This document shows positions 15,601 through 35,998 of a DNA stretch of 64,000 nt, in pieces. Made by a program: the position numbers and the translations under genes. The notes beneath the pieces are model-generated. The model was not told the DNA's origin. It saw nothing but the letters and a program-made list of their open reading frames with translations, and searched no databases. The stretch is taken from contig NW_020847687.1 in NCBI RefSeq assembly GCF_003704095.1, forward strand, positions 1 through 64,000, written 5' to 3'. This stretch comes from Pocillopora damicornis (taxonomy: Eukaryota). Position 1 is the first letter of the stretch; the number at the start of each line of letters is the position of its first letter.

Positions 15601-17903
15601 AACAATTAAGAGACTATTTTCAATTAAATCAATTAAGACCACACTCAATCAAAAGAATTATAGCCAATAAACATATTTTTTGCGATGTAATTTGACTTCT
15701 GATAGGGTTATGTTGTATCTTACATTTTTGTACATGAAATCAGGAAGACTCATGAAAAATTGTCTAAACTTATCAGTTTTATATTGAAAAGTTATATTTA
15801 CCCATAGAAAAAATAGCAACATTTTAAGCTTGCTTGGCTGCCCCTTGTGCAGTAAAGGGATAAAAATGTTTTGCATTAACTTTGTTGTTAAAATCTAATA
15901 CTTCCCTGTTCAAACTTTTCAAGTGTTTGATGAACAGAAAGAAAGAACAGAAGTAAATTTTCCAATTGAATTGCAGTAAAAATCATAGTATGTCATATAC
16001 ACATAATTAATGTAATGCCTCATTATAGAATCAAAACCTAAAGAATGCAATTTATTCTGTAAACTTCGTGCTGAATTACTATTACTTGTCATTGGACAAT
16101 ACTTGCTATGCCATATTGTCCTTACCTGACAGATGTGACAGGATGGACATGAGCACTTATAATTTTTGCAATTCCTCTTGTCAAAAAATCCCAGATGACA
16201 ATGCGTCCATCATTGCAGCCGACAGCTAGGAGAGAACCTCTTCTATTGAATGATGCTGTTCCAGCAACACTAACAGAGTCCAAGCTACCATCATATTCCT
16301 GTGATCAAAGTGTAAAGGTTAAAAAGAGTAACATAGTCAAAGCTCCTCACACCACCCCTCTTGTCAATCATTTTTGGTTCCTACTGACGGCATGAGTCAT
16401 AATCACTGGACTCTGTTGCAAGGAACCATCTCTTATAAGTGAATGCAAACATTTGTGATTATCATCTTTGGCTTAAATTTTCTTGCTTTTTATACTTTCC
16501 ATATATCTTCTTGCAATATTTATGGTTTTACTCAGGGAAATGAAATGTTTATCAATATTCTGTAAAAGCCCTTATTATGTGATTGAAGTTAGCTTTATGA
16601 TCATGTCTATTGGTTTATAAACATAACCCTACTTAGTTAACCCTTTACAACCTAACATCAGTATGCATATTCTCCATACTGTTCTCTATACATTTCCTCA
16701 GGTGCTGATAAGGAGAATTAGCTTAACAATCCAGAGCTTCTGTAATTGTTGATTATTTCCATTGTTCTCATGACTCTTGTGTGGGATTCAGGGGTGATAT
16801 TGTAAGGAGAAATTAGATTCTGGTCACTCTTAGAGGTTAAAGGGTTAAAGCATTTCTGGTGTCTGAATGGATTTTTTGCATTTATGATGACCCTGAGGCA
16901 ACCACACTAAGGCCATGACTGAAAATCATGACATTCAAAGGTCTAAGCTCTCAAAACAGGCCATCTCCTGTGAATAACGCACGCTTAACATATCAATTAA
17001 TTGCAGTCACCCAGTTGAGAAACAATTTCTTTCAACTTAGAATTGTCTTCAGTAGAGGAACTCATTCTTACCTCAGGATAGCTTTGCCCGAAAGACTCTG
17101 AAATTTGATAAAACCACTTCAATTTATATATCACTGACTAGTAAACTGTAACATACTCACACAAGTCAACACCTTTTATTAACTGAGTTTGAGATCTCTA
17201 CTATAAATTATAGACCAGGTTTTCTCCACTCAGATTTATGGCCTAGGCATGAAGCAAGCAGGCCTTAACTCTAAGTGGAAAAATGGTGTTCCCATACTAG
17301 TAGGACAGACTGAGGAAACAAGGTCAGTAAGATATTTATCATACCACTAGGTTCAAATAGAGCGGGCCATAAAGCTAAATACAGTCTGCTTAATTAACCA
17401 ATCATAGGGCCTGTACTAACTGAGAGGTAAAAGAAATCAGAATTTTTTTCCATAGGGTACACTCCTCATCGTGTGGTTAAATGACGTCTGTATCTTCATA
17501 GCAACACGAACATCACAAACTTCAGTGGACCATATCTGACATAGGTTTGGAGTGATCAACAGTTACCAGAGAGCCAGGTTTGGGAAAAATCAGTTCTCTG
17601 AGGAACAGATAAAGTCCATGGACAAGTATATGAAAACTTTTTTTCTCCAAGTAGAAGGATATGTAGTTGGGCGTTTATCATTGATTAATCTCTACGAGAT
17701 GAGCTTTACACTGCCGTCACAGAGAGCTTTAAGAGGTTATCAATTAGCAAGCAATCAACCAAAACAACATACACTGAAGGCCATAGATTACATGATAACA
17801 AATAGAATTAACACAGGCCTAGAAAACTTGCAAATAAACGACTAAGACCTGCGCAGTTTTGACAGAAACTGGTGTCATACTCACGAAGAAGTTCAAGATT
17901 CAT
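3650..17903 (-). CDS. RBBP5: Retinoblastoma-binding protein 5 (COMPASS/MLL WD40 subunit), 17 coding exons
   Basis: Exons: 17885-17903, 17072-17097, 16126-16298, 15432-15572, 14370-14457, 9323-9394, 8697-8726, 8354-8433, 7784-7909, 7361-7413, 6601-6701, 6310-6381, 5938-6021, 5583-5686, 5166-5259, 4597-4735, 3650-3792. They translate to [15 protein letters not shown]...[23 protein letters not shown]...[13 protein letters not shown]...[52 protein letters not shown], with GT-AG introns in consistent phases. Confidence 0.97.
6890..7188. other. Assembly gap (N run) within an RBBP5 intron
   Basis: N run. The flanking RBBP5 exons are consecutive, so no coding exon is lost. Confidence 0.99.
7474..7608. 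mobile_element. Foldback (palindromic) MITE
   Basis: gatcaatatcagtatctgggcaactgccaacctacccctcccctaac pairs with gttaggggaggggtaggtgggcagttgcccagacactgatactgatc. Confidence 0.8.
8975..9190. mobile_element. TTAA-flanked piggyBac-type MITE (subfamily B)
   Basis: TTAA|CCCTT...AAAGGG|TTAA. The internal sequence is shared, in either orientation, with copies near 5305, 16637, 19607, 30783 and 54094. Confidence 0.8.
10754..12784 (-). CDS. Intronless Mab-21/cGAS-like receptor (cGLR) nucleotidyltransferase, 676 aa, nested in RBBP5 intron 9395-14369
   Basis: Motifs: YTGSKAEG...ADDDFMFV (GS plus DxD), HGPA...DFVCALPC (third acidic residue), [43 protein letters not shown] helical C-terminal extension follows. 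Confidence 0.92.
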   Translation of the reverse strand: MAEAQEESNEASTSLDESTNCLPLSSPALNDTINFILSGFLIGCQPVRCGCDLSEYLYNFKSMDDSQTLVTFHYTGSKAEGIERAADDDFMFVNHNFRVVNQSTSIIEEEKEVSYFIASDLHPGYVHLRRNNVKSGHNDFKLTENDGFLRSDVVKAFMLESDPEETENDDDFFGDLTEHGPALTDDAHNQDFVCALPCCEWPDIASEFASRPREFNQPSPEIIEKIVSKGCLYVGVGHPCSEDRGKEWRLSFSLAEKTLIRCWSDVKIKCYIAVKSLCKENLSAEPKVICSYFIKTAIFWLSERMPESSWDEERILECILVIIEELLSYTTSGTCPNYFVVSNNMMDHLDFEQRKDAISILESMVSDLPLAILQSQLAADTFRSSGDFVTLYLVLKNSDSPSNAESQLAQVNSHNSLNHFQNNENYFESMHLTETLQEFKHFFFRRLESGKVEHVAKVILDDLPRVITDPSFQSAYEKLLFLSLGDSYHLMALSTCGSSAEQQQGLLAQAESWISKAGVLKHPSGFEDGGIHSSAVKCLFYYTNGDKKRATDLCNEECDKLYSDLSNLRNLCHWSCAVVITRKEAEHFSSIDSSFIAILAEGDLLFSPVSIILYIAIKCSRNEEQCCKFSKCFEDLQQWFPPQITYYEKELHKNHVSLRNILTQDGILQLQNLELQ
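13363..13572. mobile_element. TTAA-flanked piggyBac-type MITE (subfamily A)
   Basis: ttaacccttttactccc...gatctgggatttaaagggtta. Closely similar to copies near 9539, 14730, 15157 and 34194. Confidence 0.8.
15157..15318. mobile_element. piggyBac-type MITE (subfamily A, reverse orientation, internally deleted)
   Basis: TTAACCCTTTAACTCC ... GGAGTTAAAGGGTTAA, perfect TIRs. Confidence 0.8.
16637..16848. mobile_element. piggyBac-type MITE (subfamily B)
   Basis: TTAACCCTTTA ... TAAAGGGTTAA, with internal catcagtatgcatattctccatactg. Confidence 0.8.
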
Positions 17904-18220
17904 GGCAGATTTCTGTTTGTATTCCTATTACCGCATAAATGATCACATGAACACGACGCTATTTACGTGATGCTCGAGGATCCATATATTCCTTTCAAAA
18001 AGTTTCCAATAGTAAGTACGACTTTGCCGCCTCGCGTGTCGATCAAAGCGATTAATTTATCTTTTGTTGTCAGCGCCAGCGGTTTTCCATCTTAAAGGTG
18101 CGCACGCTCCCGTTAGGACGCCGCTCGACGCTCGACGGGGAGACGTGTGAAAAACGCTTTGCTTTGGCTTTTACTTAAGTGCCGTTTTCATCTATGTTTC
18201 ATTAAAATCACTGATTTGAG
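17904..18220. promoter_or_regulatory. Bidirectional CpG-rich promoter between RBBP5 and SNAPC2
   Basis: Divergent ATGs about 317 bp apart, with high local CpG density compared with both gene bodies. Confidence 0.75.
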
Positions 18221-21200
18221 ATGTCACGTCGACGAAAGGTAAGACCGTTATTAATTTGTAAACACGATAAACCGTTTTGTGTGGGCGGTCGTTCGCAGAA
18301 ATGTCAAAGGGAAAAAGTAGCTGAGTTGAAACTTCGGCAATAAGCCAAGTGGAAATTAACAGATCGAAGATTTGACAACGTAGTCTAGAATCTGCAGTGT
18401 AAAAATTCCCAGTAGATTTCGCGATCTCCTTAAAAAGACATACTTCAATTAATAAATAGATTCGTTTTCGGGGCCTGAAGTTACGGTAAAGAAATTATGA
18501 AAGGGTTCGTACGCTGATAATTTGATCGGCATAATTAATGCCAGTTCAGCCTCATTGAAAATGAAACGTTTTATTTTTTTAGAGATCAGCTCTTCCGAAT
18601 TATGAGCTTCTGTGGTACATTTTTTTATCACAAGCTAATACAGAACCAGATCAAAACCTTAGTTCTTTTAATACCACATGATCATCAGTTAATTTATGTG
18701 CATTTCACGAAAAGCATCTAAACCGATGAATCAATCGAAAAATACTGTACAAGAATTAATTATATCTACAGAATTAATGAACTTGTAGATTGCACAGTTT
18801 AGTAGATTTTTTACTGCAAAGCGATTCCAGCTCTCAATTATGGTTTTGGTCAAAATCCTTTTAGGACAGCAAGATCTGACTTGACGTGACCACCTCTCTG
18901 GTCTAAACATTAGTCGCTGTTTTTTTTTTTGCCATGTTTGTTTTGACTGAATCTAATCTAGCGATTTTATTGTAGATTAGGACAAAGGTGCACACCCCAA
19001 ATCTACTCTCTCGCCAGTTCCAGTTTTCTTATCTTGTGATTGGCTTGTGACTTATTTTTACCTTTTATCTTCTGAGTTTGTCTTGACATGTTTTTTTTGT
19101 TCTTTTAGAAAAATATGTATAACATCCTAGCAGTGAGTCTCTTGTTCTCATTCCTTCCTATTTTTGAAATTCCAGTTTTGCTCCATGCTTTCTTTAAGTG
19201 GTTTGGATTCTTGAGATCCTCATCCTTTTTTCCGGGATATAATCAAGTTTTCCTCCTTGGGGTTGTAAACATTTATTGTCATTTCAGAAATGGAACATAT
19301 ATATTCATGGCACTTCATGTTTTCTAAGTCTTTCAAATGAAAGTGAAAAAGGTCCTAATACCAGACAGTTTAGTGCCAGGAAATTACTGTTTTTATTATC
19401 AAGTTAAGAGCTGAATTTGGCAGTGATAAATTTAGCTCTGCACACATTTATTTTCATCCTCTTTTTGGAGCAGAGTGGAGCAATTGAAACGACATCCAAG
19501 GATCAGAAAGCTGATAATGATGACGATAAATTAACAATGAATGATTCCAAGGTGGAATGGAGTGATCAGGAGAAGAGACGTCTTTTAGATGCTTTAAAAA
19601 AGTATGTTAACCCTCTAAACCCCTAAGAGTGACTGGCATCTAATTTATCCTCACAATATCACCCCTGAATAAAACATTAAGGTCATGAGAATAAGGGAAA
19701 TGATCACCAACTAAAGAAGCTTGTGATTGTTAAACAAATTCTCCTTTTCAGAACCTTAAGAAAATGTATAGAGAAAGTATGGAGAATATGCATACTGATG
19801 TTAGAGTGTAAGTGGGCCTAACCCTTTGACTCCAAAGATCTGATTGTCGATTCTCCCCATAAACTGCTATACATCTCTTAACCTTATAAATTAGCTAAAA
19901 GAATTTGGTTTTTTTAGATCAAGAGAACAATCTCTACCTGAGGGGTTGGAATATTTTCATTACATGTTTGCTGGATAAGTTAGCGAGATGGTACATGTTA
20001 ATCACTTCTAGGAGTTTAAGGGTTTAGATGCAATCATTGAAAACAAATGCGTATTGCATAAGGGCCCCCTTAATTTTTTTGGTCATTTTGGAAAGATCAA
20101 TCATTGTAAGTTACTGAAGTTCTGCCAATGCCTTTGCTTGTTTTAGCATAACTATCATTTGCTATCTCCAAGCAGCTGTGTATTCCCTCCTTTTTCTAGT
20201 AATTAAGCTATGAGTAACTTAATATTGTTTTTATTTTTCTTGTTTTAACCTTTTTGTCATTTATCAGATATAAAGAGCAAAAATAATAAGCCATATTAAT
20301 GGTTTTCAAATTTATTTCTGTCTCAATAATGCTTTTTATTTAACCAGCTGGAGGCTGACAGTTATGTTGTTAACATACTTCAGGGTAATGTGTGTGAAAT
20401 ATTGCTTTCATTCAATTTGACACAGAGATGAGGGAAAAAACAACTGGCGTTGGATTGCAAGACAAGTGAAAACAAGAACAACAGCACAGGTTAATTAGAA
20501 TGCATAGCATTTTGAATTTTGTTGTTTAATTTTCTTGGCTGATGAATTGAGCTGCTGATTGACATTGATGAATTGAGCTGCTGATTGACATTCTGTCAAT
20601 CAAGTTAAAAATGCTATCTAACCATCAGTATTTCTACATCCATGTTTTGTGTCTGAGTAACAGGCAAGAGAAGCTTATGAAATATTTTTCTACAGGTGAA
20701 AGACTTTGCTTCAAAACTCAGGACAGAAAAGCAAGGTTTGTTAACTTAACAAGTGAAGAAGTTATATTGAAATTTTGAAAATCATGCCTTAAAATTTCCT
20801 CATTTGTCGGTCTTCTGTGTTTTCTTGTTCAGCATCCAACAAGAGACCAATTGCACCAAAAGATGACAGTCCACTTGAGGTATTAAAAAACTTATTTCAT
20901 GGAAAATGACATGACTTTGTGTAACTTTCTGTGCTGCTGAATTTGAATGTTATTTTTTTATTATTATGTTGTGTGTCAAGGCATGGATTAATGTGACAAA
21001 GAGACTGAGAGGTGACAGTGATGTAGATGGGACTTGTATTCCTCAGGTATGAATTCTCCATTTGGCTTGTTAAACATTTACAGTACAAATAAGCTTAGTA
21101 CATGTGAAGATTCAAGTTATTCTTTCACATTCCTGCATCAAGCTTCTCAATGATGGTTTTGGTAGATTTCTGTATTGATCTTGAATTATCAAGCTGATTA

Positions 21201-24200
21201 AAGGATTGTTAACTGCAAATTCTGTGAACTTTTTGGATTTTTAAGCGTATCCACTAGGAATGACTAAGATCTCTCGTATGGGTGGGAGGTAGTATTCTTA
21301 ATTAATCTCATGCATTGCTCCTTTGTATGGCATTTTTTGTGAGAGTGTGAAATAATGTAGAGATTTAATTAAATTTTAGCTCACAATGATTTAAATCTAT
21401 TTGACCTATATGTCCAACAAAATTTTACATGTTGTTGTATATTGGCATTAAGTCAAACACAGTGGTACATGATGTTGTAGGTTCAGATTAAGTATAGTCT
21501 CAAATGGGTGTAGTCATTTTTAATTTCATATCATTTTGTTTGTTTTTCCCTATTAAGTACTTTATTTGCAAAAAAATCTGAGCGACATTGCCAACAAGAC
21601 ATATATGCAACTGCAAGCATAATCTCCAAAAGGAAAAAAAGTATTATGCAATGTTGCATGACATACTATCACTACTTTCTTACCCTTATATAGTAAGTGA
21701 GAGGACTTATAGCATAGTGGTGTGCCAATGAAGTTTACCTTAAATTCTTTCTTTACTATAATTTTTTAGTTACTTTATTACAAGACTGTATACATTTCCC
21801 TGATGAAAAAATTTTTGGAAATTCTAAGACCAATTGGTGACTGATTTGGTTCAAACTGTGTGCTCCTGCTGCTAATTTAAGGTTAAAGTTATAGATATAA
21901 GGTAGACTAAATTTATATGAGAAGCCACTGAGAATGGAAAGGCATCCTCCCAATGCCTTTTACAACAGAATCAAACTGCAGAAACAACACCATCGGAAGA
22001 ATTGTTGGAAAAGGAAGTTAACAGCTGCAACAACCATGTTGACCCTGGTATGGAGAAAAGTGACGAAAATAAAGAGGAATCACAGGATCCAGCAGGTGAA
22101 AGCACAGATGAAAATCAAACTGGTCCAGTATCCAAAATCGACCATGACAAAAACAACCATGAGATAGACTATATTATGGTAAGACTATGAGGATATCAAA
22201 CCTAACTGCACCAAGCAAAATACTCATCAGTGCCAAAATTTTTCCATTTAGAATTTAGTGCTGATCGGGTTCACTTCATACATGGTCTATGTGATGTTAT
22301 AAGAATGTAGAAAAAACTACATACCAGTACTTCATGGTTTAAAGCTGCAGTTGAAATAGGCAAAATGAGTAAAGTGATTTTAAAACTATGGGGCCTGTTG
22401 GTTCTTTTTTTTTACCTCTTCTGTGTTGGAGAGGGAATACTCTCTTTCACCAATTCAGTGTTTGTGCCCTATCCCTGTATTAGACCTACCACACTGTCAT
22501 CTTGAATATTTGCAGGAACATCAAATACAAAATGCCCATCTTACATGATTTCTTTCAGGTTATTTTAGAGCTAAATTAATTTTATAATCCCAAGTCACAG
22601 ATAAGGTCTTGGAAAAGGTAATGGAATTGAACGATTTCTAAAGATTGCAAACCCTGAGTGACACAAAGGTTCTTCTTGTCATTCTTTAATTTTTTGTTTT
22701 TGTTTTTTGCAGAAGGACATTTTGACTAATCAGAGACAAATGATGGAGAAAATTGATGTTTTAGACTCCAAACTTGAAAAGCTGCAGTCTAATAACCAAT
22801 CCTCACCATCAACTGTAATGGAATTGTTGGCTAAGATCAATGAAAGACTCGATCAGCTCAGCAAGAATGCATCCCATGCTTGTTGTAGTGGACCTATCAT
22901 TCTTCAAACAACTCGTCATGCCAATGTTGTACATCAACCTGTCCTTGATCCCTGTCTATCTTGTAGAGACATGATAAGAAACGACAGAACTGAAATTTTA
23001 CCAGTAGCTCCTTCAGAAGATAATATCTCAAGCATCTCATGTCCTTTAAACACAAATTCTGAATCAACAAAAGCTTCAAATGTAAATAGCACAGGGAATG
23101 ATTCTTCTAAGTGTGTTTCTGGGCAACAACATTGTGTGGATTTTGTCTCCGACAAGCAGAATGATTCTTACCCTGAACCACAAATTATGGTTACCAGCCA
23201 TCACACATCTTCTCCAAGAGTTACCTCAAGTGTTCATGGTGCACCTCCTGAAGATCTCTCTGAACCACCAAAAAACAATAAAGGTAGCGTTCTGAAAAAG
23301 GTGTCTTGTGTATCAGAAAGTGAGGACATTTCACCAAGTATGTCAAGTGAACAAACTTCGCCAGCCACTAAACATTCTTCAAAGACAGATGCTTATATTT
23401 TTCTCAGTAAAGAAAGTAGCTCCATGCCAAAGGGATCCCATTGTAAAACTGTAATTGTTAGTCAACCTTCAATCAGTGCGATAAACAACTCTCCTCCATC
23501 AGCAAAAGAAGTTTCAAATTTTTCAAGACAACAGCGAATTTCATCCTCTCAAGCTGAGTGCAGAAATGTGTCTTCTCCTTCATGTACTCAACATTTTATA
23601 ACAGCATCCACACATGTTCCTTCTGTAAACAGGTCACAAGTGCGAATTACACCCTTATCCCAGCCGTCTTTCAGTGGTGGTGAGATTGTGTTATCTAACA
23701 GCCATGCTGTTGGAAAAAATCCATCATCACATGCAACAGAAATGCAGCTTGATTATAAATCCACGGCAACAGTTTTTCCAGACACTTCATGTACTGTCTC
23801 CAGCCTGTCATCTGGACAGAGCCATTTTACTCCACAACGGGCCATCTTGGTGGCTAATGGCTCTACCAGCAGTACACCATCACATAATACATGTGATAAA
23901 CCCTCTTCAGGTGTTCAAGTGCTTCAAGAACCTTCACCTCCAGAGCAAAAGAACATTCCGCCAGGTTACATAGCCCTTTCACACACTCCAACTGTTCCCC
24001 CATCTCCAAGCACACCAAACAACACAACTGCATGGCAGCCTCAAACAGTGATGTCAACAGGGTCTAGTCATGCCATGCATCAAAGAACAGAGTTCCACAG
24101 TTCTCCAGCCTCACATGCCATTCTTTCAACACCTGGTGAGTGAATTTAGACATGCATGCAGGTAATAGGTACACATTAAGACATGTGACTCTAATCTTTT

Positions 24201-27200
24201 TCAAGCCCAATATTTCTGGTAGAATCATACAAAAAAGAAAATGGAAGTCAATTTAAATGCCAAATTAAATAATGAAATAAAACTAATAATGCTTATCATA
24301 TCTCTTTATGAGGGCAGATACACTTGTTACAACCAAATTAATTATATATAAATTATTTTTAACCTTGTTTCAGTCTTTGTCAAAATAAAAAGAATGTGGA
24401 TTATCCTTTGGTTTATCAAAATATTATATTTTGCAAGATTTGGTAGAAATGGGTGTTCTTAATTCAAATTTACAGGACATCTAAGTTGCAGAAATAAGTC
24501 ATCAACTGAAAATGGTTCTAAACCCATATTAAAGACATTTGAAAAATTTGCAGAGAGATGAATCTTATGCATTGATGCCAATTTTTATTTAAAAAAAAAA
24601 AAAAAAAAGTAAAAGAAAAATGAATGGACAGGACTTTTCTTTGACTTTTATTTCTTGTGCTAATGGATTTTTTTTTTGCTCTCCAGATGAAGTTAGTGGT
24701 AGACAAGACAAAGTCTCAAGACGGGATGTTCTCAGTGCAGGTACATCTATTATCAGTTTATCCCTTAAACTCCAAGTAGTGATTAACATGTAACTTCTCC
24801 CTTTAATATCCATACATTATCCAACAAATAGGTAATGAGAATATTGAAAATATACAGATAAAAGTTGTTATCTGGATTTAAAACTAAATTCTCATCACTA
24901 ATTTATAAGGAAATGTTTAGAATCACAATCAGATCTTGTGAGTGAGAGGGTTAACATTTATGTTGACTAAGTTTTGCATTCAGTTACTTGAAAGAGTGAG
25001 AAAAAAGTGGGAACAGTCTACCTTTGATATTTTTAGGCAAGATTTAGAATGAGAAGCTCAAACCTTAGACTTTCTGTTAAAGATTTTTAAATTAAAGTAA
25101 CTGATTCCTGTTATTGTTCCCCCTTTCAGCCATGTTACTCAGTACCTATGTCTCAGAACATCCTAATCAACAGGATCAATTACACTGGCAGTCCTGCCTC
25201 AATGCAATAATCGCAGATAATCAAGGAAAAAACCAAGATCAGCCCAGACAAGATCTTTCACAGCTTGGTAAGAGTGTCATTTTTTTGGAGCATGTCATGT
25301 CAGTGTATGATCATGTTCCCATAACCAAAGAGGTTATTTTATTCCAGTTTCAGTGGGTGGTAGTCCACATGTCCTGATGATTCAACATGAACTAGAAGAT
25401 GTCTACAAGAAATGCAGAACTCGTCCACAGTTCTTTTCCCTGCGCTTGGCTGAGAGGCTATTTGGACTTGATGTAATGATGAAATCCACGCCTAATGGGA
25501 TTGGAGGAAAAGCAGCTCTAAACCCAACAATTTTGGATGCAATCAAAAGTAATTACTTATATCTTAACCCTCTATCTCCCAAAAGTGATTAACATGAAAC
25601 TTCTCCCCATAATATCCCATACATTATTCAGCAAACAGGTGATGATAATATTCAAACTTATCAGGTAGAAGCTGCTATCCTGATCTAGCACCAAGTTCTC
25701 ATAACTAATTTTCAAGGAAATGTGTAGGAGCTAGTGGGAAAAATTAAAAGAATTAACAATCAGATCTTGGGAGTTAAAGGGTTAAGTGAAGTAAAGTCTC
25801 AACAAACATTTGCATAAGCACACGACTAAAACTACAGCCTGGCCAGCTTGAAAAATCCTGTTTTTAATTAACCCCTAAAATCACAAGATCTGATTGTTGA
25901 TTCTCCCTTGTAGCTGCTACACAATTTTTTTGTCAATAAGTTATGAGAATTTGATGTTAGATCAAGGTAACAACTTCAACCTGATAATTTTGAGTATTCT
26001 CAGTACCTGTTTACTGGATATTGTATAGATATTATAGGGAGAGGTTACATGTTAATCACTTCTGGGAGTTAAAGAGTTATTAAGTAAAAGAGTAAATACC
26101 TTCATTGGACCCTCAGAAGAAGGCCTTAGGTTATTGCCAGTACTCAGTTTTGATAGACAGGGTGAAAGACAAATGAATACAAGGGGAGATTTGGTGTCAG
26201 ATCAAGATAACAACTTCTACCTAATAACTTTGAGTATTCTCATTACCTGTTTTCTGAACAATGTATGGATATTTTAGGGAGAAATTACATGCTAATCACC
26301 TCTGGTAGTTAAAGGGTCAATAAGACCAAATTATCTCATAGGGTTAAAGACAGACAGGCAGAAAGATGAACTGTTTAACTGATTGACTAATTGACAGATC
26401 ATTGGATCAAAACTAATCATCTAATTATAATAATACCCTCAGTTTTCTAACTTTGTTTGGATCAAATGTTTGAAAAAGAAGCAAATATCTGTAGGTACTG
26501 GTATATTACTCTTGAAGTTGTGAAAAATGTTAACTTGGTTTCTCTGTTTATCTCTTTTTAGCTGAAGTCCTTCAGAGGTTTGGTTCAGGAGTGTCTCCTG
26601 AACAACAGACTGAGATGTGGAAAGGCTGCATGACCAGTATTGCTCAGAGGTGCAAAAGACTCCGAAATCCACGGAGGAACAGGTCACCAATGGTCACAGT
26701 AATCAGTAATGACAATGAAGGGCCCCCTTCTATGGCAGTGGGCAACGAATTGTGTCTTAACATGGCTGGAAATCCTCAAACTGAGTCAGATGATGAAGAT
26801 GAGGAATTTGATATGGATAATTTGAATCATCCAAGTTCACATAAAACTCCAACTCTAGTCAGATTGTCATCTGACAGTGAACAAGAGGATTCACATGGCA
26901 GCATTCACAATGTTTCTTGTAGGAGTGGAAACATTAAGATTCACAACGTGAAACAATTGGAAGACTCTGGAAAGCAGATGAAGCCAGCTGTTAATTCAAG
27001 GGAAGAATCTGGGGATGAGGGAGCAGCTGTACATGTTCCTCCAGGCATCGACCCAGACATAACAGTTGTTCACTTGCCATCCACTCTGGAAACAGCATTA
27101 CAGCCTAAAGAATTAAACAAACAACTGGGCATAGCTCTCTCTCGAGCCAATGGAGCAGACACCTTTATCAGATTGAAAGAAAGTGAAAGTTCTGATGCTC

Positions 27201-30200
27201 ATCCCACACATATTCAGGAACCCTATATGCAGACAAGAGACACTGTGTCACCTGGGCATAATTTACCTGTTGCTTGCAAATATTCTGGAGACCGTCCACC
27301 TGTAGAAGGAAATATTTACAAGCCTGGTGGGACATCTGCTGAAAATATCATAGTGTCCGGCATTAAAATGACTCCAGACTGTAAGTTTATGTAAATTATA
27401 GGCCAATATTTTACAGTGAATGTACTATAACCACTTAAAATACTTAGAGTAACAGTACTGCTCAGGAATTTGAAACCCAAATAATTTGACTGGATTCAAC
27501 AGGGTTGGTATGGGTCCTGGAAAACCTGGAAAATCCTGGAATTTTATTTTGACATCTCCAGGACTGGAAAAAGACTGGGTACTGGAAAGTCCTGAAAATC
27601 TTCTTAACTCAAGGGATAGAGTTTTTAGAATTTTGCATGTCCAAAATGTATTTTAGACCATAAGGAGGATTGATTTTGAACTCTTGGGAATGAAAGGGTT
27701 GAAGGTGACCTGGAAAAATTAATCTGAGTCCAGGAAAGGTCCTTGAAATTTCTTCCTGAAAAAGGGTACAAACCCTGCACATGTGTGAGAGTATTGTGCA
27801 CATCCACCAAATGTATGCAAACTTGAACAATGTTTGCTCTTTGGCTTTGATTTAGCTGACTTTCTCTTTCCTAAAGATCTACATGTATTTTGCTGTGCAG
27901 CTATGTTATGTGGTGCTTTTATCCGTGAAGTTTCTTGCTTCATGGTTCAGACATTTTTGTGCAAAGGCAGCACTTAGAGCTGCAGTTCAATGTTTTCAGT
28001 TCAACCATCCACCTTTATTCTGTGCTCATTAATCTTTAAGAGACCTAAAATTTGACAATACGAATGGCTTGAGTGCAAATACTGTGTGTTGAAGGTTGTC
28101 CTTCTTTTTAGCTGTCATGGTTAACTGTCTGGTTCTGGATTGATGTTATCTTTTCCAAAATGCATAAGTTGAGTAGACAAGTAAGTTAGCAGCCTCAACA
28201 ATTGGCTGATGAGTTATTCCATTAACAAGAATTTATGTTTCTTGAACAACTGTGACAGGCCCTTTCATCATGATTTTGATCCAACTACAAAATGGTGTCA
28301 ATAAATCTTTTGTAACAGGCTGTGCTCTTGCTGAAACTTTCACAAGGTAGCATACTTGTTCAACGACATGTGCCAATGGCCAATCTGAAAGTACCAAAAT
28401 ACAGTCTTTTCTATTTCCCAGTAGATCATACTACAAGTATTATCCCCCACAAAAATATCCCAAAAGTTGTTCAGGAAGAGTTGAAAAGTCAAGGTCAACA
28501 TGCAGAGATTCTCCGAATAAAGGGTACGTGTCTAATCTCTTGCTTTAATTGTTATTTTATTTTATATTTTCATTGTGCACATCTGAATTTATGGCAGATG
28601 TACCGTAGACGTATTATTGGGTATTTGTTTTTTTTTTTAAAGTTATTTTCATTGTCCTTTTGAGATTGCAGTGCTTCCCTCTCAGAAGGATTGACTAATT
28701 GAGACTGTTTTTTATGTTAATTTCTTCTCTAGATGATTCTTCTAAATTGAGTCAAATAAAAGTAAAGTATATTTACCTGGAGGATTCTGGAAATGCCCGT
28801 CTTTTCATACAGCAAGACCAGGCCATGGAGACACCAGGTGAGGCAAACGCCACACCAGAAAAGCCCCATGTGCATTTGCAACAGCCATCTACTCAACCAG
28901 CACCTCAGGAATTAGCAAAAGATGATGATGCTACACTCCTTTTACTTCACTCACGGTCAGCATCAGAGCAAAACTTTGCAGTGCAATTGCTGCGTCATTT
29001 CTTTAAGCCACATGAACTTGATGGCCGAAATGTTAGAGGAGTTGGAGGAAAGCTTGCCTTAAATCCTGAAAAAATCAGTAAAATCAAAGGAATTGTATTT
29101 AGGTTTTTTCCATCCTCTCTTGCACAGCAAGAACTGTTGTGGCGTGATTGTCGAAGAGCAATTGACGCATATCTACGTAATAGAAAGCCCAGGACTTCTG
29201 TTGGGTCAAAGCTTTCTTCTTGAGCATTTTTTTAAGTTTGATTGTTTAATTTAAGCTATATTATCATTTAGTTCCCAATGCAATCTAGAAGTGAGCCTAG
29301 GAATTTTGTTAGGTCAAAGTTTTATTCTTAAGCATTTTATACAGTTTGTTTGTCTGTAAAAGTAATTTTCACTAAATCTTAATAAAAATTAAAGTTATCA
29401 TCATTTTGTGAGGTTATTTTCTTGCCATATTTCCTTAGTAAAATTTGATACAAGTTTGCCTCATAACTGAGGCAAACTTGTGGTTGCACCTTTTTTACAC
29501 TCTATCTGTTTGTTACTCTGACAAATGGCTAATGCTGGAAACATCTTTCAAAGTTCTTTACAGTGGCCAATTTACTTTGTCAATGCAGATGAAATGCCAA
29601 ATTTTCTTGTATTACCCCTACTGACGCAGAACCTAAGTTTCTGTAGAAACTTTCTTCCTTAATTCATTTATGCATCTTTTTGTCTTTCTGGTAGATGGTT
29701 ACTTCTTTAATTCATTGCCATATGGTAGCATCAACCTTTTTCTTTAAAACTAGATGCTAGCATTCACCTGCTACTCTGGTTTGTTTCTTATGAAAAGAGC
29801 AACTGATTGAGTTGTTAAGGGTAGTTTGTGTATGTCACCTGCTGTTGGTGACATACTATGGTACTTCATCATTGTTGTTTGGACTTGTCACTTAGAAATT
29901 GATGAATTTTTTATGAGGGCATCCCTTACTCAATATTAGTCTTATTAAAAAGTCAAAATACCAACAGCAAAAGGTCAGGCAAATTCCTTTTTTACGTAAT
30001 GAGTATAACCACAATGAACTGCCACCAGCATTATTTTGTGAAAATTTTCATTCTGGTTAACCAGTTTACCACACCCCAAGGAATGAAAAGTCTTATGTAT
30101 TGACTGTGTTTGTTTGGGTGACATGATTTGCAATTAACAAACATCTGAGCAGTGCTGTTACTGAAATAAACTAATATTCCTACAGTAATTATCATACAGC

Positions 30201-33200
30201 TATTGCAACTCAATAACAAGGCATTTGAGATTTTATAATGTCCTTGTTAGGGATTCTGTTTAGTAGACTGCTTACCTGGATTGAAGGGTGGCTTATTGAC
30301 AAAGGAGGTCATATGTGTAGCAGATGAATGAACAACATTGCATGCCATGTGCATAAAAACACATGAAACAAAGATTTTAGTTGATAAAATCCTACCATAA
30401 CCTGCAATTGTAATACCAATTATTTAACTCTACAGTATAATTGATGCTGCAGTTTAGGGATAAGGTGTGTAACAGAAATTTCAGGAGTTACTTCTAGATA
30501 GGGGAGGTTGACACTTGGGAAGAATCAATATTTTAATTGAGCTTGGTTCTGAGACTCGTACATATTTCACATGTGGTAATTTTTAACAAACACTGAATTT
30601 TATGGTAACTTAATTTTAAAAATCTTGAATGGTCAGTACTGTTGCTATGGTGTTGGGTATTGTAATTGTGATTTAAAAGGATGATGATAATAACTGTGAT
30701 GGGATGATTATGGTTGTCGTAGGGGTGGCAGTTGCAGTGGTAGTATTGATAATAATGGATAACATTTCTGAGTCTTCAATACTTAACCTTTCACACTCTA
30801 ACATCACTATGCATATTCTCCATACTGTCCTTTATACATTTCTTAAAGTGCAGACAAAGAGAATTTGTATAACAATCAAGGGCTTCTTTAGTTGTTGATT
30901 ATTTCCTTATACTATATTATTTATATAACCTTCATGTTTGATTCAGGGTGATTCTGTTGGGAGAAATTAGATGTTAATCACTCTTATGGGTTAATGGGTT
31001 AACTTGTCTTTTGTTTATTGATTTACATGTCAAATAGACTCCTATGTGCTGGTTGGAGGAAACCCAAATGTGGCTCTGCCACGTCAGAAGTATCTTGATT
31101 CACTCACAAGATCAGGGCAGCCAACACACTTTGCTGTCCGTCTGGCAGAGTTGACTTTTGGAGATGAGGTTCTTAGGGCATCAACAGTGACAGGAGCCAA
31201 ACCTGGCACTTTACAGTTAGATCCAGCAGTCATTGATGCCATTCAAAGTAGGTTAATGATGTTCACTTCTTAATGCTACAACAGGATATTAATTGAGCAT
31301 TCTTGAATAGTTTCCAAGTTCCCAAAAGATTATTGTATGGGGCTGCTTGATTCTCTCAAAAATTGTACATGTCGGTGATCCTTGACAATAAGGCTGGAAA
31401 GTTTATGACACCCTCTCAACCAATTGGATTTAAATCTTACACCAGTTGTTACTTCATCACTCCTGTTTTGATGTCCCTGAGACCAGGTATGAGTCTGTGT
31501 TTAAAGATACTAATTATTTTTTGATGGTTTTTAATTTTTTCATGCATTAGCTGAGGTGATCGACAGGTTTTTAAAAGACCTAAACAAAGAACAGCAAGCA
31601 GTAGTTTGGCGGAAGTGTGTCACAAGTATAGCCACAAGGTGTAAAACCCTTCGGTACAACAGATCCAAGGTGCAGATGGCACAAGGCGAACATCAGTGGA
31701 CAATTCATCCTAGCCATGTTACAGATGACAAACCACAGTAGACAAAGGAATGGCAACTTGTAGAACTGTTTTCCCTTAAGAAGCTACCAATACATGCAGT
31801 TTCTCAACTTTCAAAGAAAATTTCATTCTACTATCCTATGAAAATGATCATTACTTAGTGATATTTATTCATATCTAATAGCACTTTGTTCGTAACTTAC
31901 ACTTCATAAATTTCATTTGAGTTTTTGTTTGAAATAAATTAGGTGGTATTCTGTGAGTATTTTTTAGGGACATGGAAAATTTCCTAGCTGGTCAAACAAG
32001 GCAATCTGCTTAGTGGTAGGGAAGTTTGAGTGTGTTGTCAAAAATGGCAGTGTGGTAGCAGAAATAGCATAGATGTGAGCAATGAATGATATCTGGTTTG
32101 CATGGCAGGTTGTTGGTGAGCCTGTGTACTTGCTAATTTAAAAAAAAAATGAAAGCAAACTAATTTTCTTGGTATTGTGAATGTTTTTAGAGGGTTGAAG
32201 TGTGAGATGTGCATCAAACAGCAGATACAAAAATTATTTACTTTTTAATTATGAAATGAAGGCGTAGAAGTTTATGATGCTTACTTTCAAGAGAAAATAA
32301 TTTCATATCACAATTTTAAAGTCATAGAGTCTTAAAAAGAGGCTTTATTTAATTTTTTTTTTTTTTGAGTCTTTAGTTGTACCCATAGTGTCACCATTGT
32401 TATGGACAATAATTTTAATAGCTTAGCTCTTAAGAAATTATATATTAATCTGTGTTAAGTTGAGCAGTGTCCAATATAGGAGGGGACCTAAAGCTAATTC
32501 TAAGTTATTTGTTGACCCACTTCAAAATAATTATAATTTCAGATGAATGTGGCATAAGTTAAATTTCCTTTATAAGTAAGGAAGTAAATCTTAAATTGAA
32601 ACAAAGCTAACTTTCAGTGTCATTCTTTTTTCTGTATTGAATTAATATTAAGGTAGTATCTTTTGAACAGTTTTAGCTTACTACAAAATGACGAGATGAG
32701 AGGATTCATCAGAATGAGAGAATGTGAGGGATGATTTTGTCAATTTAATGTCAAATGAAGGTGTTTGGTTTTTTTCTCTTTTTTCACTGGAAAGGCAAAT
32801 CAGAATAGTTTTAGGTGGCTTATACTTTTGACTTTCAGGGGCCCCCAGGGCTCATTTAAGTTATTTGTAGCCTCTCTTTAAAAGAATTATAATTTCAGAT
32901 GACTGCTGCACAAGTTAATTTTTTTTTAAATAAGGAAGTAAATCTTGTAATAACAACAAAGCCAGCTTTTAATGTTATAATTTTTGCCTGTTTTGAAGCA
33001 ATAATAAGTATTCATTGAATAGCTATAGCCTACTCTATGCACATTCATTTTTCACATAATAAGGTGAGAGGATTCAACAGAATGAGAGAAAGTGAGGTGT
33101 CATTTTTTCAATTTCATTGTTTAAAAAAGGATTGGGTTTTTTTTGTTTGTTTTTCACTGGAAAGGCAAGTACAGTTTTGAGTTTGTGTTTGTTTGAATTG

Positions 33201-35998
33201 ATTATAAAGGGAGAAACATTTAGTCCCTGTGACGACCAGTTTCTTGTTCCAGTTCCTTTTATGATAGAAACTCGGAATAATCTCCTGCAACTATAAAAAC
33301 TAGAACTGGAAAAAGCTTCTGAATAAAGTACATGTTACTTAAATGCACTTTTAATAGATGTACAGGTCTTAAGAAACATTTGTTTTTGCACACACTGATG
33401 CAATAAAAAGACCAGTTTAATTTGTGAAGTTGGTAATAGCTGTCTGAAATTCATGCACTGAATGCTGCTGAAAAGTTTTTGATTATGTACTTCCTTACAA
33501 TTAGTTAACTTAACTTACCAAAACCAAGGAAGGAATGTGTGGGGGAAGCACAGGGGCACCCCACTCTTCCAATAAGATTTTTAATAACTAGGTAGTTTCC
33601 AAAGGAAAATTGGAGACCTAAACCCTATCCCCCCAAAACTTTGAACAAAATTAGGAAAAAAATTATTTACCTGATAAAGCACATCACAATTCAGCTACCC
33701 CTAGACAAGAGCCCCCCCCCTTTCCATATGATCAGCTTAAAAGGACTAAATTTTTGAACAATTTTTATGGTACTTAACTGTAGGAAGTACTGCATACTAA
33801 AGGAAATAAGCAGAAAAGGGTTGATGTAGGTTTTAATTAAGTGTCATCAAACTGGGCACAAATTGTACTTATCATGGCTGATCAGAATGAAATAAGACAT
33901 TGCAAGGAATCAGCAAGATGCTGATGTGTGTAAAAATATAGGTGACTAAGCAAGTTGTAATGGGTTTCAGCTACCCCTCAGATTGGTCAAGATTTTTCTT
34001 AAGGTTAACAGATAGAATATATATTCCTTTTGACTCTCAATTGAAACTTGCTCTGTTGCTGCATACCTTCTGAAGAAAATTAAGTTATGCTTAAAATGCC
34101 TGATATCCTTTTTTACATCCATACAGATTATGACAATTGCAGCCATGGAGCCAGTGCAACCTGGAGATGGTAAGAAAACATTTTGAAATGTCTTTAACCC
34201 TTTAACTCCCATGAGTGACCAAGAGAGTTTTTCTCGTTACAATATCAACACAATGTCAACTAGATAAGTGATGGGAATAAAGAAAAATATCAATTGGGGG
34301 ATAATTAGTTGATCCCATACTAAATTCTCTGAACTAACATTGAAAGAACTGTATGGTTGACAGTAAGGAGAATTACAAAATTTTATCTGGGAGTTAAAGG
34401 GTTAATGTATCTAGCCAGAGTTAAAGAAATTATGCATAAGAGATTTCAAAGACATTGCATCCTGAACTAGGAAATGAAAATTGTGAATGAGAAATCTCGA
34501 GTTCTTTTTCAAACCTTCCTCCAGAAGTTTTTGGCTCAGCCTTGAGACAAAGCACTTTTAAATTAATTTTCAAATTAACCAAATAGAGTCTAACTATTGT
34601 AAATCATTTGTTGAGTGACAAGTAAATAAATGTTTCTCTTAAGCTCAGGCATTAATTTTCTCATTTTGGTGTGCATGAAATGTATTTACCAAGACTATCT
34701 GTGAAACTGGATTAAATTCTGGGGAGGGGGTAGGGATAGGCTGTAATGAACTAGCACCCCATCCAGGGGCAATAGACATACTCCTTGTCACTATATGCTA
34801 TGGAAGGCAGGGTGTGCGCCAAGGATGTGCCACCTGATCTTAGAGTGGCCACAATTTCATTATTAAAAACATGTTGCATGATTTGATGCACAGGGGAGGC
34901 TTCATCACCAGATTACAGTCAGATATATACCTTGCTAAGTAGAGTGATGCGAGGTCAGCCACCTCCTGACCTCACCCCTCTTAGTAAGTAATGTTCTGAA
35001 TAAATATAATTTTAGGCCATATCTAAGGAATACCGGTACATCCCCAACCTTAGAAAAGTCTATCATGGAGAAATCTTATACATAGAGCTAGCTCCTCGGG
35101 TTGTGTTCTTTAATAAGGTTTTTTATTCATTCAGTTTTCTACTTCATCTAGGGCTGTTAATGAGAAAATGCCAAGGACACTCCTGACAAATTGTTGAGGA
35201 ATTATGTGTTATGGACTGACAGGCTATTGTGCTGTAAATACCCCCTATAATTTCACGGCGTTTCAGGCTTATTTTTAAGTACCCCACTCTTAGAACTAAA
35301 GACTTGCTCTGGGTTTTCATTTTTAGAGGAAGTTAGCACTTTTCTATCTTGCACTTTATCCTCATTTTTTGAGCAACAACAACACTTACATACTTTGAGC
35401 TCAACGTTTGTCCCAGAATTGAAAGAATTATTTGCTGCATACTAAGAAGTGCTTGAGATGTTTCTAAATCCATAGCTTTTGTGTTCAACTCATTTACTTT
35501 AAATTGTTGATTTTATTTTTATTTGTCTACATAACCTTGTAGCTCTCAATAACATTCTCATATGAACAACTTTTTCATTCACCATCACACACAGGATTCT
35601 GAACAAAGACTCGTTAATGTTTACATTCTTGACCCCAAATGTAAAACTCTAATCAATATAATGAGTCTTTTCCTTCTTTTTTCACTGCAGGTGCTCGAGT
35701 TATCTTGGACTTGATGGCAGACCTTGATCAACGTCTTGCAGGTCATGACATTAGTAGCCAAGTAAACTTTATCACTAACAAGTACAAAGAAGTGATGCAG
35801 AGTCAGGATACTGCCTTATCTTCAGAGCAGACACAAGTTCCTTCAGGTCAAGCTGAAGCAGCATGCAGCACCTCTGATCCAGGTGCAAGTAGTTCTGGCA
35901 AACCAAAGACACCACTGTCTTCTCTAAACCCCTTGAATGTTCCAGTAAAATTACTTAATCTGAAGAAATCAACTCCAGTTTCCAGCTCACAGTCATAA
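18221..35998 (+). CDS. SNAPC2: snRNA-activating protein complex subunit 2 (SNAP45)-like, Myb/SANT N-terminus
   Basis: Exons: 18221-18238, 19474-19601, 20426-20489, 20696-20735, 20833-20879, 20981-21046, then 34127-34169, 34894-34983, 35691-35998. Spliced product: [40 protein letters not shown] (Myb)...[13 protein letters not shown]...IPQ|IMTIAAMEP...[16 protein letters not shown]...SARVILDLM...[11 protein letters not shown]. This matches SNAPC2 motifs as I recall them (PIEVW, QVLTIAATEP, DFEKIYKYLS, SAVVLDLL, LNPFLVPLELL). Confidence 0.85.
20541..20592. repeat. 26-bp direct tandem duplication
   Basis: gatgaattgagctgctgattgacatt occurs twice in tandem. Confidence 0.9.
21969..29223 (+). CDS. 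Coiled-coil, low-complexity and two-BEN-domain coding unit inside the SNAPC2 intron
   Basis: Exons: 21969-22178, 22713-24135, 24687-24740, 25130-25267, ~25348-25548, 26562-27380, ~28422-28523, 28733-29223 (stop), all phase-consistent. BEN1: [12 protein letters not shown]...[17 protein letters not shown]|TEV...[17 protein letters not shown]2: [11 protein letters not shown]...[17 protein letters not shown]...[20 protein letters not shown] at 29381. Confidence 0.85.
25564..25785. mobile_element. piggyBac-type MITE (subfamily C)
   Basis: TTAACCC...GGGAGTTAAAGGGTTAA. Related copies near 24760, 25868, 26190, 19820 and 57150. Confidence 0.75.
27500..27777. mobile_element. Non-autonomous DNA transposon with CAGGGTT TIRs
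   Basis: cagggttggta ... tacaaaccctg, with internal cctggaaaa repeats. Confidence 0.65.
29516..29652 (+). repeat. Decayed short interspersed repeat with a hammerhead-like core (copy 1)
   Basis: Aligns by eye with 54405-54550 (ctctgacaaa..gctaatgc...gtggc.aattta...ctga.gcag..cc..agttt...tagaaa). Confidence 0.55.
31038..31741 (+). CDS. Alternative terminal BEN-domain module (exons 31038-31247 and 31551-31741)
   Basis: [23 protein letters not shown]...[11 protein letters not shown]|TEVIDRF...[17 protein letters not shown]. It has a phase-1 acceptor and no ATG of its own. Confidence 0.82.
32490..33170. repeat. Diverged ~370-bp tandem duplication downstream of the BEN3 stop
   Basis: aattataatttcagatga...taaggaagtaaatctt...gagaggattca.cagaatgagagaa...ttttcactggaaaggcaa occurs twice. 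Confidence 0.85.
34194..34405. mobile_element. piggyBac-type MITE (subfamily A, full length)
   Basis: TTAACCCTTTAACTCCC ... GGGAGTTAAAGGGTTAA. Confidence 0.85.

Follow-up and report, generated by a model that had tools for sequence, protein, structure and literature searches.

In the Drosophila genes lola and mod(mdg4), common N-terminal exons are joined to alternative downstream modules encoding C-terminal DNA-binding domains, with 20 or more alternative C-termini; the shared module is a BTB domain, and mod(mdg4) makes use of trans-splicing. Proteins in which a coiled coil precedes BEN domains include BEND5, BEND6 and Insensitive, and no vertebrate SNAPC2 isoform that carries a BEN domain is known to us. 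In a further arrangement, CSB-PGBD3, splicing links exons 1–5 of ERCC6 to the piggyBac transposase that intron 5 of this gene contains (PMC2268245, PMC3459987). SNAPC2 is the least understood subunit of SNAPc. The human protein, SNAP45, has been called non-conserved, the complex having five subunits in vertebrates and three in fly, worm and Arabidopsis (PMC9652321), and its residues 25–85 are predicted to contact residues 668–760 of SNAPC4 (PMC11696126). The coral locus described here is a shared-N-terminus arrangement of the CSB-PGBD3 or lola kind, in which the Myb-like 5′ exons of a SNAPC2 gene are spliced in frame either to a BEN-encoding unit or to the SNAPC2 3′ exons, a conclusion supported by the RNA contigs, the gene order in other corals and the Montipora RefSeq models set out below.

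Shared exons and the splice choice at exon 6

Within the 64,000-nucleotide stretch of Pocillopora damicornis DNA that was analysed (the window), a SNAPC2-like gene of nine exons occupies positions 18221–35998 of the + strand, on which all features given below lie. It is interrupted by a 13-kb intron (21047–34126), and inside this intron are exons on the same strand that encode an acidic linker, a coiled coil, a Ser-rich region and BEN domains. Both the interruption and the BEN exons within it had been reported by the first-pass annotation, whose coordinates for the locus were verified throughout. The sole CpG-rich stretch near the locus (17900–18500, observed/expected 1.6–1.9) includes the putative promoter and 5′ UTR region at 17900–18220, and contigs assembled from RNA runs reach back to 18103.

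Six shared exons follow, and all five of the joints between them are present in the RNA-run contigs. Exon 1 (18221–18238) opens with the ATG at 18221 (MSRRRK) and is confirmed by a frame check and by contigs of runs X1, X5 and X10 that carry the joint 18238>19474. The SANT/Myb-like domain starts in exon 2 (19474–19601), which has orthologous exons in the coral loci L001 and L002, and its second part is encoded by exon 3 (20426–20489); the joint 19601>20426 between them was found in 4/4 runs, as were the joints of exons 4 (20696–20735) and 5 (20833–20879). Exon 3 is 76–100% identical to its orthologues in other corals and on its own matches Myb_DNA-binding PF00249 with 15 bits (E 0.028), while the Montipora orthologue passes the cut-off of 24.4 with 24.9 bits (residues 22–64). 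A search of PDB with the same Montipora protein gave weak SANT matches and found no BEN structure. Exon 6 (20981–21046), also supported by RNA joints, shows 81–100% amino-acid identity in six other loci (L001, L002, L003, L012, L014 and L015) and ends in phase 0 at 21046 (..CIPQ|gtatga).

The exon 6 donor is the branch point between the SNAPC2 and BEN products. It had been proposed from the sequence that this phase-0 donor would fit acceptors at both 21969 and 34127, and this is borne out, since both predicted spliced forms have open frames (1,184 aa and 267 aa, respectively). The RNA evidence consists of assembled contigs rather than raw reads, and contig depths cannot rank the isoforms. A GT..AG joint 21046>21969, its shorter side spanning just 21–26 nt, is present in contigs from three studies (runs X1, X5 and X10). 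It is not listed for run X7, in which a loose end at 21046 matches 34127–34153, the opening 27 nt of the distal exon. Both of the junctions that had been put forward for checking were therefore recovered, and the RNA joint, the loose end and the frames together give one donor with two in-frame downstream acceptors, as expected of a shared N-terminus.

The proximal intron (21047–21968) is also retained unspliced in polyA RNA contigs, with a continuous contig at 21017–21994 in X5 and pieces in X1, X7 and X10, unlike the other introns, whose depth is near 0. Read-through from exon 6 into this intron meets a stop after one codon, after residue 122. Retention of these 922 nt would be explained if the proximal acceptor were used slowly or under regulation. 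The intron is 70.5% identical to that of L003, with many gaps, and near its 3′ end a candidate hairpin at 21938–21960 (GGCAU / 7-nt pyrimidine-rich loop / AUGCC) overlies the pyrimidine tract of the acceptor. Across seven coral loci its 5-bp core is invariant, its loop is variable and one outer pair changes from A-U to G-C; the element may have a role in the use of the proximal acceptor.

Three exons, with predicted joints 34169>34894 and 34983>35691 between them, are specific to SNAPC2. Exon 7 (34127–34169, acceptor acag|ATTATGACA at 34127), of which the first 27 nt are those joined to 21046 in X7, has orthologues in L002, L012, L013 and L014; exon 8 (34894–34983) agrees with the frame check and is 85–92% identical in L012, L013 and L014. 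The last exon (35691–35998, stop codon at 35996–35998) is single copy in the genome and matches PF11035 over profile positions 255–332 of 334 (21.4 bits, E 3.2e-4). This score lies under the cut-off of 25.5, as does that of the L012 orthologue (21.5 bits), because exons were searched one by one. A genome-wide exon-by-exon search with PF11035 returned nothing and missed even the window's own exon, and is thus insensitive; ESM Atlas gave no usable match for the last exon. The assignment as SNAPC2 is based on this sub-threshold match of the last exon, to which the N-terminal Myb/SANT match adds support.

The BEN exons and a probable nested BEN2 gene

The BEN unit begins with exon B1 (21969–22178), an acidic linker of 70 codons that runs from phase 0 to phase 0 and is supported by RNA joints. 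Its acceptor (ttttacaacag|AAT at 21969) is in phase 0, and the frame is open from there to the donor at 22178, passing an in-frame ATG at 22050. Other species do not conserve this ATG, whereas every species compared keeps the phase-0 acceptor and an open frame. There are zero indels between B1 and its counterpart in L003, but the exon is only weakly constrained, with a dN/dS of about 0.5 both before and after the ATG. The B1>B2 joint (22178>22713) is present in RNA contigs of 4/4 runs. B2 (22713–24135) starts with the coiled coil and continues into a Ser/Thr/Pro-rich region; it is covered by RNA contigs, its orthologous ORFs are 29–73% identical, and a Met-Met early in the exon (..QMMEKI..) is common to the window and Montipora. 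Orthologues of B3 (25130–25267) are 51–73% identical, and the Montipora isoforms X1–X3 differ by alternative acceptors inside this exon.

The first half of BEN1 is encoded by B4 (25348–25548), which is 62–80% identical in other corals, and the second half, together with an acidic region, by B5 (26562–27380), whose orthologues are 34–64% identical and whose donor at 27380 is in phase 1. BEN1 has no Pfam match when the exon is searched by itself; it is nonetheless a paralogue of BEN3, as tblastn with B7 retrieves B4 in other loci with E 5e-9 to 6e-10 and in the genome-wide P. damicornis search with E 4.7e-4. B7 (31038–31247), the first half of BEN3, is the most conserved part of the locus, with 69/69 residues identical in L001 and 77–90% elsewhere, and is single copy in the genome, BEN1 aside. 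B8 (31551–31741), which encodes the second half of BEN3 and the stop codon, agrees with the frame check, has orthologues of 58–78% identity and is followed after ~200 nt by AATAAA. Against a PF10523 cut-off of 23.2 bits, the first half-exon of the window's BEN3 scores 17.3 by itself, BEN3 of the Montipora protein P0049 43.1 and the BEN2 exon 34.4. BEN1 and BEN3 are single copy, the multi-copy DNA between the BEN exons consists of short SINE-like repeats only, and Pfam searches found no transposase family in any B exon, i.e. nothing to mark the nested unit as transposase-derived.

The same order of exons (SNAPC2 5′, BEN, SNAPC2 3′) recurs in L001, L002, L003, L012, L014 and L015, so that the suggested check for BEN exons in the orthologous intron is borne out in other stony-coral loci. 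RefSeq models of Montipora foliosa and M. capricornis (1,108–1,137 aa) run from the SNAPC2 N-terminus to the BEN1–BEN3 end, uniting the Myb N-terminus (residues 22–64), the coiled coil, BEN1 and BEN3 (BEN 1047–1119) in a single protein, and B5 passes directly to BEN3 (..IKMTPD-Y-..VLVGGNPNV). The shared N-terminus is present in 3/3 isoforms in these two species, and in a Desmophyllum model it is joined to BEN3. The conserved product is thus predicted to be Myb-CC-BEN1-BEN3, about 1,184 aa in the window by frame arithmetic, with the P. damicornis joint 27380>31038 inferred from orthology and phase. The first-pass annotation had proposed SNAPC2 and two Myb-BEN forms, one ending in BEN1 and BEN2 and the other in BEN3; SNAPC2 and a Myb-BEN fusion stand, but BEN1 and BEN3 are not alternatives in Montipora, which has both in one protein. 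Its statement that no description of the arrangement was known holds for the literature searched, in which no paper linking SNAPC2 to BEN domains, corals or cnidarians turned up. RefSeq, on the other hand, already contains the fusion, misleadingly named "mucin-4-like" or "serine-rich adhesin for platelets-like", and public annotation is corrected in this respect.

BEN2 had also been read as a tail of the shared N-terminus, which is not sustained: it has its own ATG exon and was not found in the five loci that span the BEN1–BEN3 interval (L001, L002, L012, L014 and L015). Its first coding exon (28376–28523, ATG at 28376) is joined to a second (28733–29223, with the stop codon and the PF10523 match) in the spliced contig L016 of a relative (88% nucleotide identity), giving a product of 212 aa; 5′ of the ATG, this contig follows the genome without a break in collinearity. 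About 20 paralogues are present in this genome, and on these comparisons BEN2 (28376–29223) is probably a separate, lineage-specific nested gene of two exons. A recent transposon origin of the BEN2 exon was rejected, because the BEN2 DNA is single copy and just the flanking SINE-like repeats are multi-copy. A Myb-CC-BEN1-BEN2 isoform would be in frame, yet is unsupported since BEN2 has its own first exon; a Myb-CC-BEN3 isoform that skips BEN1 is likewise in frame, yet unsupported.

A probable single transcription unit and the alternatives to it

We consider it likely that 18.2–36.0 kb is a single transcription unit that yields two proteins via the splice choice at exon 6. Its promoter is probably the CpG-rich one around 18.0–18.2 kb, and both products would presumably use one start site and share a 121-residue N-terminus with the SANT/Myb-like domain. 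Use of the proximal acceptor (21969) would add B1–B5 and the two BEN3 exons, ending at the polyA signal near 31.9 kb, and the resulting protein would comprise SANT/Myb, acidic linker, coiled coil, Ser-rich region, BEN1, acidic region and BEN3. Use of the distal acceptor (34127) would skip the entire BEN block and give the 267-aa SNAPC2. The hairpin-like element on the proximal acceptor tract is possibly involved in the slow or regulated use of that site. The first-pass annotation was right that no CpG-rich promoter precedes the BEN exons (observed/expected 0.27 or less at 20450–22850), although the absence of a CpG island is weak evidence for the absence of a promoter, because the BEN2 unit is likewise without one.

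If the BEN unit were instead an ordinary same-strand nested gene, transcribed from a separate promoter within the 21.0–22.0 kb intron and translated from the ATG at 22050 or the conserved Met-Met of early B2, the joints of exon 6 to B1 would represent minor chimeras produced by read-through, with no role at the protein level. Transcript starts are invisible in contigs, the B1–B2 contig is at least as deep as the shared exons in X7 and X10, the BEN2 unit is a transcript that arises here without a CpG island, and the Met-Met is kept between the window and Montipora, all of which would fit such a gene. However, 21046>21969 occurs in runs of three studies at a depth of 16.8–28.1, compared to 37–58 for the B1–B2 contig, and the unspliced contig is continuous into exon 6; orthologues lack the ATG at 22050 while keeping the acceptor, phase 0 and the indel-free frame of 70 codons; and RefSeq places the shared N-terminus on every Montipora isoform in two species. 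We therefore regard an independent nested gene as highly improbable. An extra internal promoter is possible, and a fused Myb-BEN mRNA from the SNAPC2 promoter may coexist with a BEN-only mRNA from an internal start, in which case some BEN proteins would carry the SANT/Myb module and others would lack it. The depth of B1–B2 in X10 (46.5) exceeds that of the spliced and retained forms (16.8 + 12.8), but contig depths are unreliable; the conserved Met-Met of B2 is compatible with this reading and could start an independent BEN protein, while no contig starts within the intron apart from exon 6 and the BEN unit has no CpG island. Coexistence of the two mRNAs thus seems unlikely, if conceivable.

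It might also be argued that splicing to the BEN block acts mainly as a brake on SNAPC2 output, through competition between splicing and polyadenylation together with intron retention, and that the long fusion protein is of little importance. The substantial retention of 21047–21968, with its immediate stop codon, and the conserved element on the proximal acceptor would both be expected of a brake. Against this, strong constraint acts on the BEN exons at the protein level (the first half of BEN3 remains 69/69 identical where B2 is 50%), no stop interrupts the frame between the shared exons and the end of BEN3, and Montipora annotation records the product as a protein, which makes a predominantly braking role most improbable. 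We thus favour the single transcription unit with two protein products.

A possible link to SNAPc and comparison with known systems

On the analogy with human SNAPC2, the BEN isoform probably retains the SNAPC4-docking module, and therefore could bring BEN DNA-binding domains to SNAPc; alternatively, it could compete with SNAPC2 for SNAPC4. It may be speculated that stony corals make two versions of SNAPC2 by splice choice, perhaps under control of the conserved hairpin at the 21969 acceptor, the large one keeping the SANT docking module with its tail replaced by a coiled coil and two BEN domains, and that this version would place on SNAPc a sequence-specific, probably repressive BEN module which regulates snRNA transcription. 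We hold this scenario as a whole to be rather unlikely. The locus itself offers a concrete and testable link between the basal snRNA-promoter complex and sequence-specific chromatin regulators: a far larger BEN-domain protein makes second use of the N-terminal module of the cnidarian SNAPC2 orthologue, and coral loci whose B2 identity has dropped to 29–35% still have this arrangement.

Outside the Scleractinia, the closest match to BEN3 is Nematostella LOC5512772 (P0048), in which a coiled coil also precedes BEN domains. Unlike the coral fusion, its N-terminus does not resemble that of SNAPC2, and it matches BEN3 in seven stretches; to our knowledge, exon sharing with SNAPC2 is not described for P0048, BEND5, BEND6 or Insensitive. 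The predicted 267-aa coral product, with an N-terminal SANT/Myb-like region and a C-terminal region that matches Pfam SNAPC2 below the cut-off, resembles human SNAPC2/SNAP45 (PMC11696126, PMC9652321), and a coral SNAPC2 orthologue with a second, much larger product is at odds with the picture of SNAP45 as non-conserved (PMC9652321).

As in lola and mod(mdg4), shared N-terminal exons are joined to alternative downstream 3′ modules, but the coral locus has two supported outcomes, the SNAPC2 tail or the BEN block, both BEN domains lie in one product (in Montipora, and by inference in P. damicornis), and the shared module is SANT/Myb-like rather than BTB. As in CSB-PGBD3, a DNA-binding coding unit that has a 3′ splice site and a polyA site of its own lies in a host intron on the same strand, the full host protein and an N-terminal fusion both arise by alternative splicing, and the arrangement has long been conserved. 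Unlike CSB-PGBD3, the coral host is a small SNAPc subunit, and the nested unit is a multi-exon coiled coil and BEN block with no transposase domain, in which terminal repeats were not found and BEN1 and BEN3 are single copy. While CSB-PGBD3 is confined to higher primates, the coral arrangement spans loci of very different similarity to the window and Montipora. It is an example, of long standing in animals, of how alternative splicing lets a host gene capture a DNA-binding unit nested within it.

The SNAPC2 gene and the BEN exons in its long intron

Reading of 18.1-36.2 kb, together with a listing of open segments, yielded a nine-exon gene on the + strand, in which six 5' exons (E1-E6; 18221-18238, 19474-19601, 20426-20489, 20696-20735, 20833-20879 and 20981-21046) are separated by a 13,080-nt gap from three 3' exons (E7-E9; 34127-34169, 34894-34983 and 35691-35998). 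Every splice site is GT..AG and, by local frame count, the spliced form comprises 267 codons with zero internal stops. The last exon is the sole piece of the gene to match a named family, Pfam SNAPC2 (PF11035; 21.4 bits, E 3.2e-4, profile positions 255-332 of 334); its score lies under the 25.5-bit cut-off because the query was one exon, and the orthologous last exon of another coral scores equally. The SANT/Myb-like N-terminus scores 15 bits with PF00249 on exon 3 alone and 24.9 bits, over the cut-off, on the Montipora orthologue. The 234-Mb assembly searched contains the SNAPC2 3' exon only once.

Within the long intron (21047-34126) lie the BEN-block exons, all on the same (+) strand: B1 (21969-22178; acidic linker, phase 0 to 0), B2 (22713-24135; the start of a coiled coil, then a Ser/Thr/Pro-rich region), B3 (25130-25267), B4 (25348-25548; first half of BEN1), B5 (26562-27380; second half of BEN1 and an acidic region), the BEN2 exon (28733-29223; BEN2 with a stop), B7 (31038-31247; first half of BEN3) and B8 (31551-31741; second half of BEN3, with a stop). 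With the Pfam BEN profile (PF10523), BEN2 reaches 34.4 bits, BEN3 of a Montipora protein 43.1 bits and the first half of the window's BEN3 17.3 bits. BEN1 has no Pfam match and is a clear paralogue of BEN3; in this genome the two match nothing but each other. Exon B4 has tandem acceptors 6 nt apart (25348 and 25354), either of which would preserve frame. Short interspersed repeats occur at three places. At 19620-20030 the contigs reach a depth of 10^4 and leave many loose ends in each RNA run; the sequences at 27497-27787 and 30783-31008 recur dozens of times across the genome at 75-82% identity.

Splice junctions in RNA contigs

RNA contigs from four runs in four studies were aligned over 18000-23999; as assembled contigs rather than reads, they can establish that a form exists but give neither proportions nor transcript ends. 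All five joints between E1 and E6 are present, and B1 is joined to B2 in 4/4 runs. The first-pass annotation had predicted that the donor of E6 would be used with both the BEN acceptor and the distal SNAPC2 exon, and both junctions were recovered. The former, 21046>21969, is present in runs X1, X5 and X10 (depths 28.1, 22.7 and 16.8), reported as 21043>21966, which is GT..AG when cut 3 nt to the right; the latter, 21046>34127, appears in run X7, where a contig reaches 21046 and its next 27 nt are those of 34127-34153. The E6>B1 joint has 21-26 nt on its shorter side, the length expected where a k=31 graph branches, and since only 3 nt are ambiguous at the joint it is unlikely to be a repeat artefact. 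A third form consists of unspliced contigs from 21017 to 21994, a single stretch in X5 and fragmented in the remaining runs; compared with a contig depth of ~0-2 in other introns, these indicate that the 922-nt intron is retained at a noticeable level. The reading frame from exon 6 into this intron meets a stop after one codon.

The arrangement in other corals and in public gene models

The open frames of B2 and B5 match exon-sized ORFs in many coral assemblies, and seven coral loci were retrieved and searched with the exon peptides of the window. The order E(2-6), B1-B5, B7, B8, E7(-E9) is found on one strand in four of them (L001, L002, L012 and L014), and two more (L003 and L015) cover part of this order, in agreement. 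Across loci B2 identity drops from 73% to 29%, while B7 (BEN3a) retains 77-100% (69/69 in L001). L012, L014 and L015 resemble Montipora more than they do the window, and L001-L003 lie nearer to the window, thus the arrangement spans loci of very different similarity. The L015 locus yielded neither B8 (BEN3b) nor the SNAPC2 3' exons. After its BEN3a exon, L015 carries a minus-strand ORF block (12716-20915) with matches to an rve integrase and a Pox_A32-type ATPase and a 1,250-aa ORF, which looks like a Polinton/Maverick-type element. In Desmophyllum pertusum (L017, MU827811.1) 5' SNAPC2-like exons lie upstream of BEN3. A 10-kb span of this locus, which includes 500 N, yielded no match to B2, B5 or the SNAPC2 3' exons; their absence may reflect divergence, assembly gaps or real loss.

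A search with BEN3a without length filter recovered a 1,128-aa protein of Montipora foliosa, XP_068686789.1, which opens with the SNAPC2 N-terminus and continues through the acidic linker, coiled coil, Ser-rich region and BEN1 directly into BEN3. Five sister models come from M. foliosa and M. capricornis. These Montipora models (XP_068686788-90 and XP_068732665-67; P0049, P0068-P0072) carry SANT/Myb and BEN domains, with an N-terminus common to SNAPC2, and are named "mucin-4-like", "serine-rich adhesin for platelets-like" or "uncharacterized", the first two names reflecting the Ser-rich region only. Each species has three isoforms, which differ only by the B3 acceptor (differences of 9 and 29 residues, as in P0049, P0069 and P0070). 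KAJ7323750.1 of D. pertusum likewise joins the Myb N-terminus to BEN3. The closest non-scleractinian match is a Nematostella protein (LOC5512772), which matches BEN3 in seven stretches and has an N-terminus unlike SNAPC2. The SNAPC2-BEN arrangement is real and conserved. The earlier remark that no description of it was known holds for the literature searched, about 8.4 million papers and preprints, none of which was found to combine SNAPC2 with BEN, coral or cnidaria; it does not extend to RefSeq, which already includes the fusion under wrong names.

Possible alternative starts, acceptor choice and function

A search with BEN2 led to a contig from a relative, 928 nt long and carrying a 212-aa ORF, in which the counterparts of 28271-28523 and 28732-29246 of the window are joined, at 88% identity. 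The contig is spliced, is collinear with the genome upstream of the ATG equivalent to 28376, and has an in-frame stop preceding that ATG; the best reading of BEN2 is thus a nested gene of two exons (28376-28523 and 28733-29223, 212 aa) between the BEN1 and BEN3 exons. This one contig may instead represent a processed copy. This genome holds ~20 BEN2 paralogues, of which some contain stop codons (e.g. C1759) and others lie in frames of 578-607 aa. Apart from two SINE-like repeats, the surrounding DNA of BEN2 occurs once in the genome, and the BEN2 exon was not found in five other coral loci spanning the BEN1-BEN3 interval. By local frame count, splicing of B5 to BEN2 would preserve the frame.

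Conservation of B1 bears on whether it is an internal coding exon or a first exon. Its in-frame ATG (22050) is not conserved, the Met of other species lying elsewhere or only at the end of B1. What every species keeps is the B1 acceptor with the ~30 nt that precede it, phase 0, and an open frame 68-75 codons long. In the comparison with L003, the closest relative, B1 shows no indels, compared with 86-158 gap positions in both flanking introns. Its dN/dS is ~0.5 either side of the ATG, which points to weak constraint, equal on both sides. In favour of an internal start, a Met-Met (..QMMEKI..) is conserved where B2 begins. The claim that a CpG island marks the SNAPC2 start and is missing before the BEN exons was borne out (observed/expected 1.6-1.9 at 17.9-18.5 kb; at most 0.27 between 20.45 and 22.85 kb), but is weak promoter evidence because the BEN2 unit, apparently its own transcript, also has no CpG island.

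The single donor at 21046 probably picks a near or a far acceptor: the near acceptor would commit the transcript to the BEN block and the polyA signal near 31.9 kb, and the far acceptor would require polymerase to pass the ~31.9-kb polyA site and the BEN2 unit with the transcript still uncleaved. A conserved element (21938-21960) lies 9-12 nt upstream of the proximal acceptor, and recurs in L001 (9388-9410), L002 (8739-8761), L003 (1469-1491), L012 (~3241-3263), L014 (~1957-1979) and L015 (~1678-1700). Its core stem GGCAU/AUGCC is invariant, its 7-nt pyrimidine-rich loop is variable and one outer pair changes from A-U to G-C between clades; judging from this pattern, it may be a hairpin governing near-acceptor use. 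The retained intron and the conserved element together suggest that near-acceptor use is held back or regulated, the role of the element being one that we infer.

Human SNAPC2 residues 25-85 and 95-323 are predicted to contact SNAPC4 residues 668-760 and 1270-1401, respectively, both predictions being backed by crosslinks (PMC11696126). The coral shared exons encode 121 aa covering the SANT-like module equivalent to the first of these interfaces, so the BEN isoform could, by analogy, dock on SNAPC4 or compete with SNAPC2. Among known systems CSB-PGBD3 (PMC2268245, PMC3459987) comes closest, and the resemblance to Drosophila lola and mod(mdg4) is looser; the coral locus differs from these systems in having no transposase, in offering two outcomes rather than many, and in that its host is a SNAPc subunit.
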